Part shown: positions 54,281 through 64,000 of the stretch, in pieces
Position numbering within the stretch: position 1 is the first letter of the stretch
How the letters are laid out: the number at the start of each line of letters is the position of its first letter
Origin: Saccostrea echinata
Taxonomy: Eukaryota
NCBI RefSeq assembly: GCF_033153115.1
Contig: NW_026889750.1
Span: 50,220,001-50,284,000 of the forward strand
Reading direction: 5' to 3'
DNA: 64,000 bases
The notes under the pieces: generated by a model
What the model was told of the DNA's origin: nothing
The model's input: only the letters and a program-made list of their open reading frames with translations
Databases searched by the model: none
Position numbers and translations under genes: made by a program

Positions 54281-57200
54281 ATGGCGGCAAAGTTTGATTG
54301 TATTTTGATGCATGGACCACCTTTTTCAGTAATTCTTGATTTTATATGTTATATAACAAACTTAATAGCAACTTCATTTCTGTCATGAAATATCTAAGAT
54401 AATGTGTTAAAATTGATGCAATGCAAAGCTTCAAAATGTATTTATAATAACGGAGAGACTACATAACATACATCATCTCGCTAGAGCGCGGTTATCCCTC
54501 TCTAGGTTAGAAACAATTCCCCTGTAGAGAGATCATCTCGCTAGAGCGCGATTATCCCTCTCTAGGTTAGGAACAATTCCCCTGTAGAGAGATCATCTCG
54601 CTAGAGCGTGATAATCCCTCTCTAGCGGAAGAATAAACATTACCATAAACAGGTGTTTTGTTGTTTTGTTTACAAAATAATCAAATATTGCATATAAATG
54701 AGTTGCTGAATTTTAATGAATGAAATCAAAATACTATTTTATTGATTTGTTGCAATTACTGACAGTATTTTGTTTTTCACATAACAAAGCAATTACTGAC
54801 TGTATTTTTGGGCAACCTTTCTTCCCTCTGGGGTTAACATAATCAATTGCAGTTGCCCTCAACCCCCAGCCAATATATGTATATTATTTACATCTCTGGT
54901 AAAGGTTTAAACTATATTTAAAGAAGCAAATATTTCGTGACAATTTTCTGTTGTTTTACCATGAACTAACTGTAAGATTTGTTAATAAACATGATAAACT
55001 TGGTATATTCATAACTGGAAATAATGAGTACAGTCAGTGTAGTTTGCTTGATAGGATAATCATTATGATTTATTTATTCAGGGGAGTGACGTGTACTACC
55101 AGAGATTTCTCAGCAAGGACCATGTTAGGATTATTCCTAAGCATATATTTTCATTACACCAGGAATATGGACTTAGAGATATTGTTCTAAATGTACATAA
55201 GTGTTTGAAGCAGGTAACCTTTACAAATGATAAACATGAACTTTTAGTTTAATATATTTTCAGGATGCTGTCATTTTATTCTACAATTTCTTCCTAAATT
55301 TAAATAATTTTAAAAATTCTGTTAGAACCAGAAAGTGGTTGTAGATGATGAAAATGGTAGTTTTGCAAAAAGATCTGCATACCTCAGGATGATTCAGAAA
55401 AAGGTAAAATGAATTAAATATACATGTATTGTATTGCACCTGTTCACTTGTTAATCAAAGTAAACCAATTTAAAGTAGCAATTTGAATTAACCTACAAAA
55501 TGCACTTTGTTACTTCAATGAAAGCTGGAGTTTAAGATTCATTAAGACATGTAGTAGATGGGTACTTTTCAGCTTCCAGAGAAGACTGTGGCTCTTATTA
55601 GTCTTTTACCAAAATATGGGGAGGCCCAAGTGTTGTGGAACCAGGAAGTATGTCTTAATGAGGAGAATACAGTGACAGTCAGCTACCCAGAGATTTCTTC
55701 CTGGTTTGATCCAACAACCGGCCAAGTGGTTTACAGCTCAAGCAAGTACTTTATATGTCTGTTAATACATGCATGTTACAAGCACATACAAATGTAATAG
55801 ACAAGAAGGCAAATGTTAGATGCCAATTCTTTAAGGTTGATTTTACTAATCATACGTCATTAGCATATTTTACTTCTACGCATAATTAACTCATTTTAAC
55901 CCAATTACTGTTTAGATGATGAACCTGACGAAGAGGAGGGATATAAAGTATTTAATAAAAAATCACATCTGGAAACCTTTTCTGCATTCAAGGTATCAAG
56001 AAATTTATTAAGCAATCTTCAATTCTTTTTCAATTTAAATGGGTCAAAAAACTCTACAAGGAACCTATTTACCAAGCCTCTGAAGAGTAATGATAAAAGT
56101 TTATTAGACTTACAGAAATTTGCTCAAGAAATTATCTCCCTTATTTCAGTTTGATATCCCAGGTCTGCTGATACAGATTGAAGCAATATATCACACATCT
56201 GATGGCTCACTGAATCTTAAGAAAGGGATGAAACAGATATGTATCCACTGGAATGAACAAAATCCTGTAGGAAGAATTATCTTCATTCAGTATGGTATGA
56301 AAATCATTAAATACTAGGAAATCACTAATTTTTGTGGGAGGTTATTTTTTGTTGGTTTCGTAGTATGAAAGGACCAATAAATTCATGTTCTCCACAAAAT
56401 GTTTAAACTTCATAACCCCCTAAAACATGTTTGACTACGAACCACGAAATGAAATCCATCCAGAATCCTTTATTTTTTCCTTGAACTACAAAAATTTGAC
56501 CCCAAGAAAATAAGTGATTTTATAGTTGGTAAATAAAAGATCTTGAAGTGATAATTGCAATTACCATGTTACTTTATTATTCAATTATGAAAGACATATG
56601 CACATACACATATACATTTTTGGGGAAATGTGTAACAGATTTATATGTGCAAAAAATGTGACTGTCTGTAGTGCAAATTTCCAAGTTTTAAGCTTTAATT
56701 TTAGGTAACAAAGAATCTATAGAGGAAATTCTACATTTGCTGACAAGGTTAGCAAAGCAGGTTAGAAATAAAAAAATTTTTCAATATTTTGTAGCTATTT
56801 AATCTTTAAGGTGTTTCTTTTCGCACTTCGTAAAATTCTGAGCTATCGTCCACTCTATTCTATCATTGAAACAAACAACATGTATATGACAGTGGGTAAC
56901 TAGGTATTATGCAGGGGATTTGACAAACCATCGTTCAATCAAATTGCAGTAGGCAGAGCTAATAACTGCACTCATGATACCCTCATCTTCATTGCTCCTT
57001 ACCAAGAAAAACTCTGTTCCTCACCAATTATAGACAAGACACTAAATGCTCCTACCAAGAAAAAAAAGGTACATTTAGTCATCGATGTAAATCCGTAATC
57101 TCAGAATGACCTATATAAAAGTATATCACATGGCTTCAAGAATGACATACCAGAATATTTGCCCTAAGGTGACAGGAAAGCCCTGGAGTGTTATGTCACC

Positions 57201-60200
57201 CAATGCCGAAGGCAGAGGGAGACATAACACACCAGGCCCTGAGGACTTTCCTGTCACTGAGGGGCAAATAATGTACGTGTACATAAATTGGCATATTCAA
57301 AATTTAGTGCAATCACTGGGTATGGAGTTGTTGGCATAATCATGAATTAGCTACACATACCGGTAGCTGTGCCATGTATTGTATTTATAAATGATTTCTT
57401 AGTGGTATTCATGAATTAGCACATTATTTGTCCACGCCAAAGCCGCTAAAATATGAAGCTTGCTTTTTTAAGTACACATACAGTATTCTGGTATGTCACC
57501 CGAGAACTTAATAGTAACCAGAATATCATAATCTAAAAAGTTTGACCAGTTACGACATGTAGAGAAGATATTACCATATAAGTTACGACATGTAGAGAAG
57601 ATATTACCATATAAGTTACGACATGTAGAGAAGATATTACCATATAAGAGGAATTTTAGTGAGACACAAATTTAGCGATTTATCCCAAAAAATTGGTGAA
57701 CATTTTTAGCGAGAAGTAATTTAAGTGTTTTTATAATGTCAAGATATCTCTAACAACCAATATGGAATACAGTAAAACACGCTAATAGTGAAGATGCTTA
57801 TGATAAATTGACACTTACAGAGAAGAGATTTTTATTACCTAGCTGTGACTTTAATTTATAGTGTATATAGGATATAACGAAATACGTTTATAACGAAGCA
57901 AAAATGTCCGCCCCGGCACTTTGTTATAAGCGTGTTTTACTGTAAATTAATTGTTAGCGATATTCAATTTTAGTGATCTTAGAACCTTTGCTAATATTGC
58001 CAAAATTCAATCCTAACTAAAAATTCTGCTTATACGGTATATTATAGCTTGATTTTCCAAGTTACTAGTCATGTAGAGAAGATATATTATAGCTTGATTT
58101 TCCCAGTTATTACATTGTAGAGAAGCTATTATATTGTAGCTGGATTTTCCTATTTATCTGTTCCACATTGTTGATCCGCCTGCTGCAGGGATCTTCTCTG
58201 AGCCTCCTAATCCAGGGATTCTGGCTTTCTTACAAAAGAGACACCATTTATTTCTACACAGTACTGTAAGTAGGCTTACTACTGGTAGAAATGTAATATA
58301 CAACACTTACAACTGTTGTGTAAAAAAAAATTAGAGAATATGATTTTAGTCAAATTTAAGTTTCTCAAAGTTTTTTGGACTTTCTGAAAGTAAGTTGGGG
58401 AGGGTGGTTTAAATCCAGTGTAAGTAAACATACAATGTTGATCTGATAGATGTGATGTGAAGTTTGCAAAAAAAGTTATATTAAATAAGAATTTTATCTA
58501 TGTTTCTTTCAAATGAAAACTGTTAAATTGAAAATTAACTGGACATAAATTGTAAAGCCCAGAGTAGGAAATAACATTTACATATAAATTGTTTTAGCCT
58601 CAAGATCACTTTTCAGGCATGTACATATTTCTAGGGAAAAAATGGAATAGACTTTATTTTTGTTTTTTCTAGAAAACTGTGTATATATACAGCAACCAAG
58701 ATCACATGACCATGGCTAGAGCTGCCGGCTTGAACTGTGTCAAGGTCAGTGTTTTCACCTGTGCCTTAGATTCACTTATTAAAGTGAACATGAATTCAGC
58801 TAAGCACAATTATTTCAGTTCAGCATTGCACACAGAAAGGCAACTATTTCTGATATAAAGCATTTGCAAAGACAACTACAAGTATTTCCGATTAGCATTG
58901 TATATGTAAAGACAATTACACATTTCAGTAGATGATGTCTATGAAAAAAAATAATAAAATGACACAAGACTCAAGCATTTTTATCAACATTTTGAGCCTT
59001 GCTGCACTTTCTTTGCAGATAACTCAGATTCTACAGAATCCAGCTCTGGTGAGTATAAAACCTACATAGTAGATATCCATTTAATATCCTCCACAATGGA
59101 ATTATATGGGATACAGAATCCAGCTCTGGTGAGTATAAAGCCTACATAGTAGATATCCATTTAATATCCTCCACAATGGAATTATATGGGATACAGAATC
59201 CAGCTCTGGTGAGTATAAAACCTACATAGTTGATATCCATTTAATATCCTCCACAATAGAATTATATGGGATACAGAATCCAGCTCTGGTGAGTATAAAA
59301 CCTACATAGTAGATATCCATTTAATATCCTCCACAATGGAATTATATGAGATACAGAATCCAGCTCTGGTGAGTATAAAACCTACATATTAGATATCCAT
59401 TTAATATCCTTCACAATGGAATTATATGGGATACAGAATCCAGCTCTGGTGAGTATAAAGCCTACATAGTTGATATCCATTTAATATCCTCCACAATGGA
59501 ATTATATGAGATACAGAATCCAGCTCTGGTGAGTATAAAGCCTACATATTAGATATCCATTTAATATCCTCCACAATGGTATTATATGGGATACAGAATC
59601 CAGATCTGGTGAGTATAAAACCTACATAGTAGATATCCATTAATATCCTCCACAATGGAATTATATGGGATACAGAATCCAGCTCTGGTGAGTATAAAAC
59701 CTACATAGTAGATATCCATTTATAAAACCTACATAGTAGACATTCATTTATAAAACCTACATAGTAGATATCCATTTAATATCCTCCACAATGGAATTAT
59801 ATGAGATACAGAATCCAGCTCTGGTGAGTATAAAACCTACATATTAGATATCCATTTATTATCCTCCACAATAGAATTATATGAGATACAGAATCCAGCT
59901 CTGGTGAGTATAAAACCTACATAGTAGATATCCATTTAATATCCTTCACAATGGAATTATATGGGATACAGAATCCAGCTCTGGTGAGTATAAAACCTAC
60001 ATAGTAGATATCCATTTAATATCCTCCACAATGGAATTATATGAGATACAGAATCCAGCTCTGGTGAGTATAAAACCTACATATTAGATATCCATTTAAT
60101 ATCCTCTACAATGGAATTATATGGGATAAACTGGAAGCACCATGTTAGTAGGTCCGTAGATGCGAGATTATAAGCTCAGTTTATTAATTTATATAGCACT

Positions 60201-63200
60201 TTCTGGTTCTTATCCAACCAAACTGGCTTATAACCACTTGGATGTATATATAATACATATTAAATTACTACTGTGCTACATTGTTTACAACATACACAGG
60301 ATACTGTATTCTACATTTAATACACCTGTGTGATCAGTAAAGTTTAGGTTTAATTATTTCATACTTTAGCCGACTTGGATAATATTGTGCATAGATCTAT
60401 GGATACTTAAATTAAAGTATTTTGTAAACAATGCATCTGATTCACATTTAAGGATTGACTTACTGGTTTTAAGGTTAGCATCAGGATATGGTCCAGGCTT
60501 GTATAAAAACCAAACTTTACAGCATCTACTAATGCTTGATCTGATGCAAGGATCAAATGCTGTGTCTGACCTAAATTTTATGGTTGAATGATTCTGGTTA
60601 AGTTCAGCATTCAGGCCCGTAGAAACTGAAAGTGCGACGGGAGGGAGGGGGCTTGGCCTGGCCCCCCACTTTTTTTTGCTTGTCAGATAATTTTGTTAAG
60701 TTGCCCCCCCCCCCCCCTTTGGTCAATTTAGGTTGTTTTTTTTGTTTGTCAGATTTTTTTTCGGAAGTTGTCCCCCCAACTTTTGAAACCATTACTAGAG
60801 GCCTGGCATTTAGACATGCTTCTATCTTATAATAAGAAATATGCAAACCAGACAAGTATTCATTGTACAAAAATAAATGTTCCGTCTGATGCAAGATTCA
60901 GGGGCTGTATCTGACATGGTTACATTATACAATGGAGTGACACTGCTTAAGATCAATGTCTGAGAATATGTTAGCGTAGTACATGTAATACTGTTGAATC
61001 ATTAGATTTCATGGTGGCTCAATTTTCCTGGATTTTGTGGGTACCTCTCATACATGAATTAACATTCTCCATGAATTAATGAATTAGGGTTGCAAAGTCA
61101 TATTTCCTATTGCAATTCCACGAACCTTTTAAATTTACGCAATTGACGAAAATTGGCCCTCATAAATTTTAATGATTCCACAGCATACAAACCAAACCTA
61201 CACAGGCTACACTGCATTGTGAATGTTTTTATTTTTTTGTTTGATGTTGAATCTGTCCTACATGGTGACTGAGGAGAAAGGCAGGAGTTACATTAACTTA
61301 CTTTTTTTTTTATCAAAATTCCTCTGCAAGGAAAGAATTATTTAATAAATTTAGAGTAATTCTCAATAATCAAAAGCAGTTTGGCAATCAGGATGAAAAT
61401 TTATAGAAAAATACTATTGAGAAAAACTGATTTTATGAGCAATGTAATACATGATGTGTAGTTAACTTTATTTTAGGTCATTGGTAGTCATGTGATTACT
61501 CGGTCCACTGTCCCAGAATACCTGAAAACAATGGAGATTTTACCTACAGACCAGAAAACACTCGAAAGACCTAATCTCCCATGTGTTACAGAGGAGGAGA
61601 ATTTCCTGAACGGCAACATGAAGTGTGTTCTCCCATACGGGAGACAGGAGTTTATTTTTGCAAAAGATTTCAAAATTGTTTTGAGGTAAAATATTTAAAG
61701 TTACTCTCTTCAAAAGTTGCATCAGTGTCAGATTGAAACAGAGAAGTTTATCAAGATATTTTTGTACATGACTCCTTTCTATTTAAAGTTATCAAGATCT
61801 GTACCAGAGCTGTGTATCAGTACTTAAACAACCAGAGAACATCTACACACAAGACGAGGAGAAAGAACGAGAATGTAATACTTCATTGAACACATCCTTA
61901 AATGAATCCTCCAGAAAACTGCCCTCATGGATGATGGGAAAAGAAACACCGCCAGTGAAAAAGTCCACACATTCCAAAACGATTCTACAGCGGACTGAGA
62001 GTTCCAGCTCCACAGAGGGGCAAGGAAGGTAAAGGGGGGATGTAGGTGTACTGTAATGATGAATATAGAGTCCAGATAATTATTGAGACAATTTTATTAT
62101 ATAGATACGGGTAATAGTCTATGATATAAATCTACTAAAATTCTAGAGAATCATAATAAATGTTCAATATCATTGTGTTTTATTGAACATTGACTTTGCA
62201 TTATGTATACAAGTATGCCCCAAAAAATTCTGAATGCAAGGTCAATATCAAACATGCCATTTTAAACCAAAAAATGTCACCTGGTCACCCGCTCAATGGT
62301 AAGATTTATGATAGGCAGTTGCAGTGAGATAAGAGGGACAAGGAAAGTAAAGGGGGGTCTAGGTGTAATGTGTAAGGATGGAAGCTGGAGGAATATAGAG
62401 TCCAGATAATTACTGAGACAATTTTGCCCCAAAACATTCTGAATGGGAGCATTCAATATTGAACAAGCCGTTATAAACAAAAAAATGTCACCTGGTCACT
62501 TGCTCGATGGTAAGATTTATGATGGGCAGTAGCAGTGAGATAAAATTTTTTGTTACCACAGAAAATTGAAATAATTAAGGCATGTTTAGTTTTGTGTGAT
62601 TTATTGGTGTGTAATCACACAGACTTATTATGTAGGAATATTTCATGAAGTGCGCAAGCACTTCATGAAAAATATGCCTACCTGCAAGTCTGTGTTATTT
62701 ACACACCAATAATTCACACTAAACTTAAAAACATTCCTTATATTTACATTTTACATGTTTAAAAGCACCAAAAATATACTCAATGTTTGAATGTCTTGCT
62801 GCCTTATATTGTTAAATTTTTTTAACATCTCTGTAGCTCATAGTGACATCACTTTAGCGCAGATTTCTTTGTGTGTATTTCCACAGTGTGAATATACACG
62901 AAAGTGACATTAAAATCAATTTCATAGTTGGTTAAGTAGAAAAATACAGCAAATCTAAAATATTTAATAATGTATTGCCTGTAAGCCACAATAAAAGTCT
63001 AAATAAGCAAATCATAACGCTTGGTTGGGTCATTGGAATGATGTGATATTGTACACTTCCAGAACAGACATTGATATTGACACCTTTAATGTGGATACTA
63101 ATATTAAATAATTCTCATTAATTTAAAGTTACACATATTTCATTTAAATAATTAATATAAATCAATAGGAAAGTGTTTTACTATATAACAAAGGACTTAC

Positions 63201-64000
63201 TGAACGTACATTGGAAATTGGTGAATATTGGTACTGGTTGGCTGTAAAAATGCACTTGCAAGCTTGTGCCAATATTCACCAAAATAAGTTAAATAACCCT
63301 ATAATGTTCAATGAATTTATGTATGAATATATACAGAAAGATTACATAGATTGACAAAGAGTCAGTATGCACCGTGATAAAACTTCAGAGATAAAAAGTC
63401 AGGGGGAAAATATATCTCATGTTTTGTATTTTTTCTGAAAATTTGTTTCCAGACAAACAATATATGTAATGACAGAAGAGGAGCTGTTAGAAATTGCTAA
63501 AGATGTTTTGAAGCAGGTATATATTGACACTGAACTAGTCTAATGACACAGTATATTTAAGAAGTTATTCCATTATGACAAAGATATGAAGATAATGTGA
63601 TGTATTGATATTTATCCTCTGTAAACACATCAAACCAAGGAACCATTACCATCAAAATGTGATTTTAGCAAGAGTTACGTCCTGTTAGCCGTCATATTGG
63701 AGTTCAACATGGCCTGATTCCTTCATTAACCAACAGATTTAAAGCTGGGACGTGTAGATAACACTGTTTTATGAATATACATTTGTCAAAGTGTCAAATA
63801 TTGTAAAGATTTTTTATCCTATATTTCTGTCATATATGTATAAACTGGTTGTTCAAAGAGGAAAATCACCAGTTTGATGTCCAAGATGGCGACCATTGGG
63901 AATAATCAGAGGGAAAATATGTGATACAAATACTATCATTCTATAGGATTGTTTATTACAATTTACAGGCAGGCAGAACAGATGTGCTGAGAGAATCTGA
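54281..64000 (+). CDS. PNK-like (degenerate P-loop kinase + degenerate HAD phosphatase) protein with a C-terminal Ku-binding / CYREN(MRI)-like region; 3' end off the window
   Basis: Phase-consistent exons 54281-54328, 55082-55213, 55326-55403, 55573-55741, 55916-55992, 56150-56294, 56705-56760, 58140-58265, 58673-58744, 59019-59048, 61477-61685, 61789-62028, 63453-63516, 63969->64000. Motifs LMHGPPFSGSD, KVVVDDEN...R..Y, EPDEEEGY, EPPNPGIL, MARAAG, RKLPSWM, RQTIYVMTEEELLEIAKDVL. Confidence 0.7.
54472..54625. repeat. 60-bp tandem repeat x2.5 in intron 1
   Basis: Unit ATCATCTCGCTAGAGCGCG..TCCCTCTCTAGGTTAG..TTCCCCTGTAGAGAG. Confidence 0.9.
57548..57647. repeat. 33-bp tandem repeat x3
   Basis: AGTTACGACATGTAGAGAAGATATTACCATATA x3; related degenerate copies at 58060-58130. 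Confidence 0.88.
59032..60128 (+). repeat. 80-bp tandem repeat (13 copies) containing TACAGAATCCAGCTCTG|GTGAGT
   Basis: First copy is the end of the 30-nt exon 59019-59048. Confidence 0.93.
62577..62739. mobile_element. Palindromic foldback element (~160 bp)
   Basis: Arms GTGTGATTTATTGGTGTGTAATCACACAGACTT..CATGAAGTGC / GCACTTCATG..AAGTCTGTGTTATTTACACACCAATAATTCACAC. Confidence 0.7.

Follow-up and report, generated by a model that had tools for sequence, protein, structure and literature searches.

An oyster gene that joins a degenerate polynucleotide kinase-like module to a CYREN/MRI-like tail

Gene structure and transcript evidence

We analyzed a 64,000-nucleotide stretch of the Saccostrea echinata genome (contig NW_026889750.1, positions 50,220,001 to 50,284,000; hereafter the window), in which a single gene of 15 exons starts at position 54281 on the plus strand and runs on past the end. 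Its product is the 730-residue RefSeq protein XP_061171053.1 (P0001), annotated only as "uncharacterized protein LOC133180589". The exons, numbered in window coordinates, are as follows.

54281..54328 (+), exon 1, with the start codon; MAAKFDCILMHGPPFS, first half of the degenerate P-loop; identical to P0001 residues 1-16
55082..55213 (+), exon 2, GSDVYY...CLKQ, which completes GPPFSGSD, with Ser where the Walker A Lys should be
55326..55403 (+), exon 3, KVVVDDEN...KRSAY, including NQKVVVDDENGSFAKRSAY; Walker B-like strand of the kinase-like domain
55573..55741 (+), exon 4, closed by a GC..AG intron (donor GCAAGT at 55742)
55916..55992 (+), exon 5, DEPDEEEGYKVF, containing DEPDEEEGY; end of the kinase-like domain
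56150..56294 (+), exon 6, HAD motif I remnant FDIPGLLIQIEA (Q.E for DxD) and motif II remnant GRIIFIQYG
56705..56760 (+), exon 7, NKESIEEILHLLTRLAKQ
58140..58265 (+), exon 8, HAD motif III remnant EPPNPGILAFLQ at 58200-58223, containing EPPNPGIL (Pro for the catalytic Lys)
58673..58744 (+), exon 9, HAD motif IV remnant YIYSNQDHMTMARAAG at 58682-58729
59019..59048 (+), exon 10, a 30-nt micro-exon (ITQILQNPAL) whose 3' half and donor site are the first unit of an 80-bp tandem array
61477..61685 (+), exon 11, conserved region after the HAD-like domain, with no assigned fold
61789..62028 (+), exon 12, APLF-type Ku-binding motif RKLPSWM at 61913-61933
63453..63516 (+), exon 13, (R)QTIYVMTEEELLEIAKDVLKQ (63454-63516), counterpart of the MRI beta-strand (T52 V53 Y54) plus helix, i.e., the multimerization/ERCC6L2-binding block
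63969..64000 (+), start of exon 14, which continues to 64249; exon 15 runs from 64342 to 64807 (2070-2350 and 2443-2908, respectively, in the sequence record L001 that covers both exons) and ends ...KPDLSILDEIFF followed by TGA

All of the motifs listed in the initial annotation were found on the plus strand at their reported places, and its observation therefore holds. To establish whether both halves of the open frame belong to one mRNA, we aligned contigs from four sequencing runs of two studies, which we take to be RNA, to the locus. GT..AG joints link exons 8 to 14 in contigs of 2 to 4 of the 4 runs, joining the HAD-like exons to the RKLPSWM and RQTIYVM exons. The 59048->61477 junction, which had been named in advance as a check along with the C-terminal motif described below, was seen in 3 of the 4 runs (X1, X3, and X5) with GT..AG ends (joints 58742->59017 and 59047->61476), whereas the joint 63513->63966 was present in 4 of 4. 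One contig (X3 record 14, 2151 nt) showed 0 differences in its four listed pieces (58138-58265, 58673-58742, 61476-61683, and 61787-62026), and its record numbering and the table of joints place 59017-59047, 63451-63513, and 63966 onwards on the same contig. A 30-nt loose end before 58138 in X1 and X3 maps to 56729-56758, within exon 7. The frame stays open through every junction, and P0001 equals the exon-by-exon translation letter for letter, including the exon 14/15 junction, with the GC..AG intron after exon 4 read from P0001 residues 87-143 against the genomic sequence. The gene is single copy, since 12 of 12 genome matches lie in this locus.

A family of mollusc proteins with the same layout

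Using exon 11 as the query, only 2 representatives among 1.84 billion were matched, P0001 at 100% identity and a second protein, P0002, at 59%. Broader searches gave nine proteins at E <= 0.01, from Saccostrea (3), Magallana, Ostrea, Pecten, Solemya, and Haliotis, and one further transcript, and a repeated search returned the same nine. All share the same layout, and the recognizable blocks are invariant or nearly so in the eight that were aligned. Compared with Pecten, Solemya, Haliotis, and P0009, the four most distant members of the family, P0001 is 57-73% identical in the strand-helix block and 46-61% identical in the Ku-binding motif but only 8-20% identical in the long tail between the blocks.

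The kinase-like domain

Residues 1-165 align to 11 T4-type phage polynucleotide kinases (PNKs), from the P-loop to beyond Walker B, with an hhalign probability of 94.3 (P 1.1e-7) and a score of 54.6 against a maximum of 20.4 in 40 column-shuffled controls, and GPPFSGSD falls on GCPGSGKS of T4 Pnk. The domain also aligns to the kinase exons of the oyster's own PNKP, with P values of 5.4e-5, 3.4e-4, and 7.1e-4; the first of these pairs exon 3 with the PNKP exon SVIVDNTNPREDARQ, while exon 5 gives only a weak collinear match to the last PNKP kinase exon (P 0.085). The PNK-3'Pase model TIGR01663 hits the kinase part of 2 of 8 family members, with E values of 7.7e-5 (Haliotis) and 1e-3 (Solemya) on model positions 363-450, and AAA_33 also matches 2 of 8. 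In a comparison of language-model features, all ten best named clusters for residues 1-400 are viral PNKs carrying AAA_33 and PNK3P, with a top score of 0.93 and 179 shared features.

No Pfam, PHROG, or NCBIfam model reaches its curated cutoff on any member, phmmer of P0001 against PDB sequences gives 0 hits, and the family profile reaches PNKP only at an E of about 1.5, behind spurious ribosomal L36 hits. In P0001 the Walker A Lys-Ser pair is Ser-Asp. Among the five aligned proteins that cover the whole GxxxxGK[ST] motif, it is intact only in Solemya and Haliotis, which keep GPPxSGKS, while Magallana P0005 covers only its start. VV.DD is kept widely, but no Asp could be placed at the kinase general-base position, although the alignment columns there are of low confidence.

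The HAD-like domain

Residues 160-330 align to 29 GmhB-family HAD-IIIA sequences over 129 columns, from motif I to motif IV in order, with a probability of 93.1 (P 3.3e-7) and a score of 49.1 against a maximum of 19.2 in 40 shuffles. Four other slices of the protein gave P >= 0.32 in this comparison, and the true HAD domain of T4-type PNK scored less against the same family (P 1.5e-5). The HAD-like slice does not match the T4-type HAD domain itself (P 0.26) and matches only one phosphatase exon of the oyster PNKP, weakly (P 0.047). The HAD fold is predicted from profile comparison alone.

The catalytic DxD, Thr/Ser, Lys, and GD...D map to Q.E, Q or C, P, and Y(S)...H, respectively, and the residue mapping proposed in the initial annotation (Q.E for DxD, PP for KP, and Y..H for GD..D) is exactly what the alignment gives. 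The motif III Lys is Pro and both motif IV Asp are replaced in all eight aligned proteins, whereas the nucleophile Asp is replaced in seven and kept only in Solemya, in LFIDWEG.

The C-terminal tail

The core of the APLF-type Ku-binding motif is RxxPxW, and human MRI carries it in the MRI-A peptide SETKTRVLPSWLTA (PMC4831024), with Met being the commonest residue after the Trp across species (10.64898/2026.07.22.740027). The R, L, P, W, and M of RKLPSWM are invariant in 8 of 8 aligned proteins, and the human MRI-A peptide lands on residues 419-429, a placement reached by 0 of 1000 shuffles, even though the raw score is only 1.5 bits.

The second block, TIYVMTEEELLEIAKDVLKQ, lies 35 residues after the Trp, a W-to-T spacing that is 36 residues in human, and reads TVY[IV]M[TN]E.EL in several species. 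It corresponds to the human multimerization domain (residues 49-81, with YCMN at 54-57; 10.64898/2026.07.22.740027), in which T52, V53, and Y54 bind the HEBO domain of ERCC6L2 (10.1101/2025.11.28.691009). This comparison rests on the residue numbers printed in those papers rather than on an aligned human sequence. A search of this genome with the VIGSSK/HEBO model returned no match, while a Ku_N exon is present.

The protein ends ...LDEIFF just beyond the window, as had been predicted, and E-I-F-F is shared with the human MRI-X peptide VLKYVREIFFS (PMC4831024). LDEIF plus one residue is found in 7 of 8 proteins, with LNSIFD in Haliotis. The XLF-like motif consists of a basic patch followed by a conserved aromatic residue, but the residues just before the mollusc C-terminal Phe are acidic and the basic residues lie 10 or more positions upstream. 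The human MRI-X peptide scored no better than 188 of 1000 shuffles against the family profile.

The Pfam MRI model PF15325 matched neither P0001 at E <= 10, nor the eight family members at E <= 1, nor four members at E <= 5, nor any place in the genome at E <= 10. The only link to this model is the language-model comparison of residues 401-730, in which the CYREN cluster (PF15325) ranks second at 0.81, a score that is only a lead.

Comparison with known proteins

Vertebrate CYREN/MRI (C7orf49) has the Ku-binding motif R.LPSW[ML], a T-[VI]-Y-x-M strand followed by an amphipathic helix about 35 residues later, and an ...EIF(F) ending, with variable, probably disordered linkers, and the oyster tail presents these blocks in the same order. 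However, human MRI1, a protein of about 157 residues, carries its motifs between residues 6 and 81 and at the very C terminus, while in the oyster protein about 420 residues, including the kinase-like and HAD-like module, precede the Ku-binding motif and the tail after the helix is about 245 residues. APLF likewise has a Ku-binding motif ending in W-M and acts as a scaffold on the Ku80 vWA domain, but we detected no FHA or PBZ domain in the oyster protein, and APLF is not known to have the MRI strand-helix block or the C-terminal XLF-like motif.

Phage T4 Pnk (PseT) and the viral PNKs share the order of kinase first and HAD phosphatase second, yet they are active enzymes of about 300 residues with no Ku-binding tail, and the oyster HAD-like domain resembles GmhB-type HAD-IIIA sequences rather than the T4-type HAD_PNKP domain. 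Animal PNKP has a related kinase domain, a HAD-IIIA-type phosphatase domain, and a role in DNA-end processing in nonhomologous end joining (NHEJ), but it is built as FHA, phosphatase, and kinase, whereas the order here is opposite, no FHA domain was found, and catalytic residues are lost. Canonical PNKP exons, in phosphatase-then-kinase order, lie at separate loci elsewhere in the oyster genome, on C2 and C54.

The combination is not entirely new. One sentence of a 2023 preprint (bioRxiv 10.1101/2023.05.26.542399) notes a sea urchin PNKP-like protein fused to a CYREN/MRI-like Ku-binding motif. It gives no domain order, no statement on catalytic residues, and no mention of the central MRI block or the C-terminal XLF-like motif, and homology of that protein to the mollusc family remains an assumption.

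Interpretation

We read the locus, with fair confidence, as encoding a long invertebrate form of the NHEJ accessory factor CYREN/MRI. In this view, the N-terminal half is a PNK-like module in the phage T4 order that in the oyster has lost the Walker A Lys and the catalytic residues of all four HAD motifs, and would therefore be a pseudoenzyme kept under constraint. The C-terminal half is mostly variable and carries three conserved linear motifs in the order and spacing of human MRI, the last of them with the reservations given above. The tail would dock on the Ku80 vWA domain at a broken DNA end, its central block would multimerize or bind an ERCC6L2-like partner, and the inactive module would be held there as a binding or sensing unit for DNA termini rather than as an enzyme. 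The single transcribed gene, the profile relationships of the two N-terminal domains, the substituted catalytic residues, and the conservation of the tail blocks are results of our analysis, whereas Ku binding, multimerization, DNA-end binding, and the loss of activity itself are inferred from sequence. The initial annotation, which proposed a catalytically dead, kinase-then-HAD module fused to a CYREN/MRI-like Ku-binding module as a candidate novel NHEJ scaffold, is largely supported in its interpretation, although "novel" is weakened by the sea urchin note and its suggestion that vertebrate CYREN is a remnant of a larger protein stays an inference.

Other explanations have to be considered. 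The tail could have only converged on CYREN, as Ku-binding motifs arose independently in APLF and WRN, given that short linear motifs evolve easily, that more than 600 human proteins contain RxxPxW (PMC4831024), that PF15325 does not match, and that the C-terminal peptide comparison is not significant. We consider this unlikely, since different MRI-defining blocks occur in the same order, with nearly the same W-to-T spacing and the third at the very C terminus, they are the best-conserved parts of the tail, the central block matches human T52 V53 Y54 C M N, and no APLF or WRN feature (FHA, PBZ, or helicase) was found. A fusion of a short CYREN gene to a PNK-like gene within molluscs or protostomes, with vertebrate CYREN never having had the module, is less likely but possible. 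Our searches, limited in length and sensitivity and without sequences from other phyla to inspect, found the family only in bivalves and one gastropod, but if the sea urchin protein is homologous, the fusion predates the protostome-deuterostome split.

It is also possible, though improbable, that the module still binds, and perhaps uses, nucleotide or acts on DNA ends in at least some lineages, as suggested by the intact P-loop of Solemya and Haliotis, the widely kept VV.DD, and the Solemya nucleophile Asp; the substitutions in HAD motifs III and IV of all eight proteins, the Ser-Asp of the oyster P-loop, the unplaced kinase general base, and the separate canonical PNKP loci speak against this. 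A read-through or assembly chimera of two neighboring genes is very unlikely. Intron 10 is long (2.4 kb) and holds the tandem array, and the runs are only presumed to be RNA, but the joint across it is seen in runs from both studies and the same layout appears in independently annotated genes of 7 other species or sources.

CYREN/MRI is described as the least conserved NHEJ factor and as a disordered vertebrate microprotein, with contradictory reported roles as stimulator and inhibitor. A conserved invertebrate form carrying the MRI motifs behind a predicted folded but inactive PNK-like module would offer an evolutionary origin for the microprotein, a testable idea for what the family originally did at DNA ends, and a tractable folded handle for biochemistry in a family that is otherwise disordered, and may be a case of a repair enzyme fold reused as a noncatalytic end-binding unit. 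More tentatively, and somewhat less likely than not, the ancestral bilaterian CYREN/MRI may have been a large protein in which a catalytically silent, T4-order PNK module was tethered to Ku by the tail and worked as a DNA-end sensor or cap. The vertebrate protein would then be the tail left after the module was lost, and the reported link of CYREN and ERCC6L2-MRI-Ku to staggered or overhanging ends (10.1101/2025.11.28.691009) would be a relic of that role. A bolder extension is that the module came from a viral PNK gene, since viral kinase-then-phosphatase PNKs are its nearest look-alikes. In databases, the mollusc proteins are all named only "uncharacterized" or "hypothetical."

Gene structure and transcript evidence

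The + strand from 54281 holds a multi-exon gene in AT-rich animal DNA. To follow its splicing, we aligned contigs from four public runs of two studies, presumed but not established to be RNA, to positions 58001-64000, and obtained a series of joints with GT..AG ends.

Splice joints (+ strand) and the number of runs in which each was seen
58265->58673: 2 of 4
58742->59017: 3 of 4
59047->61476: 3 of 4
61683->61787: 4 of 4
62026->63451: 4 of 4
63513->63966: 4 of 4

The listed pieces, record numbering and joints of a single 2151-nt contig (record 14 of run X3) place all of these exons on it, and its four listed pieces show no difference from the window. The initial annotation had asked for cDNA evidence linking 59048 to 61477 and, allowing for the shifts in where the joints are cut, this junction is exact. 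By phase arithmetic the frame stays open through every junction, and a read-through chimera was rejected as an explanation. The 30 letters hanging before 58138 map to 56729-56758, which fixes exon 7.

Pfam scans of 12 exons taken one by one found nothing, and neither did a word search with exon 15, which covers only proteins of 84-268 aa. A search with exon 11 alone, however, returned two proteins at E <= 0.001 out of 1.84 billion representatives, P0001, which has 730 aa and is 100% identical over the exon, and P0002, a 144-aa fragment at 59%. P0001 is RefSeq XP_061171053.1, "uncharacterized protein LOC133180589 [Saccostrea echinata]", and equals our exon translations throughout. Reading this protein against the DNA alone, we infer that intron 4 has a GC..AG boundary, with the donor GCAAGT at 55742. 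The gene has 15 exons, the last one and a half of which lie beyond the window, and the protein ends ...KPDLSILDEIFF. It is single-copy, since all 12 of 12 genome matches fall in this locus.

A conserved mollusc family

A word search with P0001 gave nine proteins at E <= 0.01 among 7128 candidates. These come from S. echinata (the query itself), S. cucullata (two proteins, one partial), Magallana gigas, Ostrea edulis, Pecten maximus, Solemya velum and Haliotis rufescens, together with one transcript-derived protein. Those that carry a name are called only uncharacterized or hypothetical. A profile search added no further relatives. Eight of the nine proteins were aligned, leaving out the partial one.

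The kinase-like part of the N-terminal module

Single-model scans gave weak support. Full-length Pfam, PHROG and NCBIfam scans of P0001 found nothing above chance, and no model reached a curated cut-off. AAA_33 matched 2 of 8 members (best E 4.2e-4), and TIGR01663 (PNK-3'Pase) matched the kinase portion of the Haliotis (E 7.7e-5) and Solemya (E 1e-3) proteins. A phmmer search of PDB with P0001 gave no hits, whereas the family profile gave as its best PDB hits ribosomal protein L36 on GRIIVICD, which we take as spurious, and reached PNKP kinase domains only at E about 1.5.

Profile-profile comparison was clear. Since hhalign against the single T4 PseT sequence aligned only the P-loop (Prob 2.6), we built an alignment of 11 phage T4-type PNKs. 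Residues 1-165 matched this alignment with Prob 94.3, P 1.1e-7 and a score of 54.6 over 77 columns, from the P-loop to beyond Walker B, while 40 column-shuffled controls reached at most 20.4. We also compared this part with 11 exon peptides of the oyster's own canonical PNKP. Three kinase exons gave P values of 5.4e-5, 3.4e-4 and 7.1e-4, the last kinase exon gave 0.085, one phosphatase exon gave 0.047 and the other six gave 0.21 or worse. The Walker A Lys-Ser pair is Ser-Asp in the oysters and Arg-Asn in Pecten but is intact (GKS) in Solemya and Haliotis, as one expects of a decayed true P-loop.

The HAD-like part of the N-terminal module

Residues 160-330 do not match the T4-type HAD domain (P 0.26). 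We therefore assembled from 61 bacterial genomes a 29-sequence alignment of GmhB-family HAD-IIIA phosphatases, which they do match, with Prob 93.1, P 3.3e-7 and a score of 49.1 over 129 columns running from motif I to motif IV. Forty shuffles reached at most 19.2, the reversed slice gave P 0.17 and four other slices of the protein gave P 0.32-0.42, while the genuine HAD domain of T4-type PNKs scored lower against the same family (P 1.5e-5). A scan of genome contigs with E. coli GmhB returned only relatives at 88-99% identity. An oyster PNKP phosphatase exon gave only chance hits on primases in a tblastn search of phages and no hit in viral contigs and, in the absence of a PNK3P-type alignment, the GmhB match does not tell whether the module is nearer to PNK3P or to GmhB-type HADs.

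Catalytic residues of HAD phosphatases and the residues aligned to them in this family
Motif I: DxD canonical; Q.E here
Motif II: Thr canonical; Q or C here
Motif III: Lys canonical; Pro here
Motif IV: GD...D canonical; Y(S)...H here

For motifs I, III and IV this mapping is as the initial annotation proposed. The motif III Lys and both motif IV Asp are missing in 8 of 8 proteins, and only Solemya keeps the first Asp.

The domain order is kinase then HAD, as in T4 Pnk, whereas the two canonical PNKP-like loci of the oyster genome, at C2:4850657-4853921 and C54:45244200-45254542 (contigs of the assembly), have phosphatase then kinase. The C2 copy reads FDIDFT where HAD motif I is usually DxDGT, and several C54 exon matches contain stop codons, although these may only reflect exon edges. 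In a language-model comparison of residues 1-400, all ten best named clusters were viral PNKs with AAA_33 and PNK3P, with a top score of 0.93 and 179 shared features; by the method's own figures this is supportive but not proof. The module is 28-40% identical between the oyster and the four most distant members, compared with 8-20% for the long tail after the helix, and is therefore under constraint.

CYREN/MRI-like motifs in the C-terminal half

Grundy et al. 2016 give the human MRI Ku-binding peptide as SETKTRVLPSWLTA and the C-terminal XLF-like peptide as VLKYVREIFFS, with the core R-x-x-P-x-W and conservation "among vertebrate species". According to Vu et al. 2026, Met is the commonest residue after the Trp across species, and residues 49-81, a strand with YCMN at 54-57 followed by a helix, form a multimerisation domain. 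Reichl et al. 2025 report that T52, V53 and Y54 form a strand that binds the ERCC6L2 HEBO domain.

The oyster protein has RKLPSWM, in which R, L, P, W and M are invariant in 8 of 8 proteins. This is followed, 35 residues after the Trp (36 in human), by TIYVMTEEELLEIAKDVLKQ, with Y, M, E, E and L invariant among others and TVY[IV]M in three relatives. At the very C-terminus, LDEIF plus one residue is found in 7 of 8 proteins. Against the four most distant members, the strand-helix block (57-73% identity) and the Ku-binding motif (46-61%) are the best-conserved parts of the tail, while the C-terminal block is 58-83% identical in three of those four and only 20% in Haliotis.

When scored against the family profile, the human Ku-binding peptide lands on residues 419-429, and none of 1000 shuffles reaches it, although the raw score is small. 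The same test with the C-terminal peptide was not significant, at 188 of 1000 shuffles. The language-model comparison placed a chordate CYREN cluster (PF15325) at rank 2 for residues 401-730, with a score of 0.81, which we regard as a lead only. Against membership of CYREN/MRI, the Pfam MRI model matched nothing here.

Prior knowledge and interpretation

The bare idea of a PNKP-like/CYREN-KBM fusion in an invertebrate is already in print, as a one-sentence remark on sea urchin in a preprint (bioRxiv 10.1101/2023.05.26.542399), the only prior description that our literature searches found. The mollusc family, the T4-like domain order, the loss of catalytic residues and the presence of the central MRI block and the C-terminal motif were found in no paper searched, although supplementary material outside these searches (Table S1 of the preprint, Supplementary Fig. 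1 of Grundy 2016 and Fig. S5 of Vu 2026) may hold invertebrate sequences that bear on novelty. The protein differs from the known factor in its N-terminal module, but it is already annotated as an uncharacterized protein and was partly anticipated by that sentence.

The sequence features recorded in the initial annotation are real. Its reading of them, as a kinase-then-HAD pseudo-PNK fused to a CYREN/MRI-like Ku-binding module, is largely supported. Our analysis shows one transcribed gene, a decayed PNK-type kinase plus HAD-IIIA module as judged from sequence comparison alone, and three MRI-type motifs in order, of which the C-terminal one is assigned only tentatively. The functions are inferred: the tail would dock on Ku80 vWA, and a Ku_N exon exists in the genome; the central block would multimerise or bind an ERCC6L2-like partner, on which a search of the genome with the VIGSSK/HEBO model, which found nothing, weighs neither way; and the dead module would bind or sense DNA termini. 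If the sea-urchin protein is homologous, the fused form is older than the protostome-deuterostome split and vertebrate CYREN would then be its remnant, a possibility that we hold tentatively and consider at best about as likely as not.

Repeats and other features of the locus

The micro-exon 10 overlaps the start of a tandem array in which each unit repeats the last 16 bases of the exon plus its GTGAGT donor, so that intron 10 begins with a row of duplicate donor sites. Only the first donor was seen used in the contigs aligned, and a few low-depth contigs lie inside the array. The following features were observed in the window.

59032-60128: 80-bp tandem array of about 13 units, 95% alike, starting inside exon 10
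54472-54625 and 57548-57648: short tandem arrays in introns 1 and 7, 60 bp x 2.6 units, and 33 bp x 3.1 units with 100% matches
63646-63937: dispersed repeat of about 300 bp in intron 13, with at least 40 further copies at 68-81% identity on many contigs of this genome
62601-62800: very high contig depth in intron 12
63170/63297: joint between opposite strands in one contig of run X1
696-841: run of 146 N

The depth at 62601-62800 reaches 293, against about 20 on the exons, with many variant letters and loose ends in all four runs, and this looks like an abundant repeat-derived sequence. The joint at 63170/63297 suggests an inverted repeat or fold-back in intron 12.
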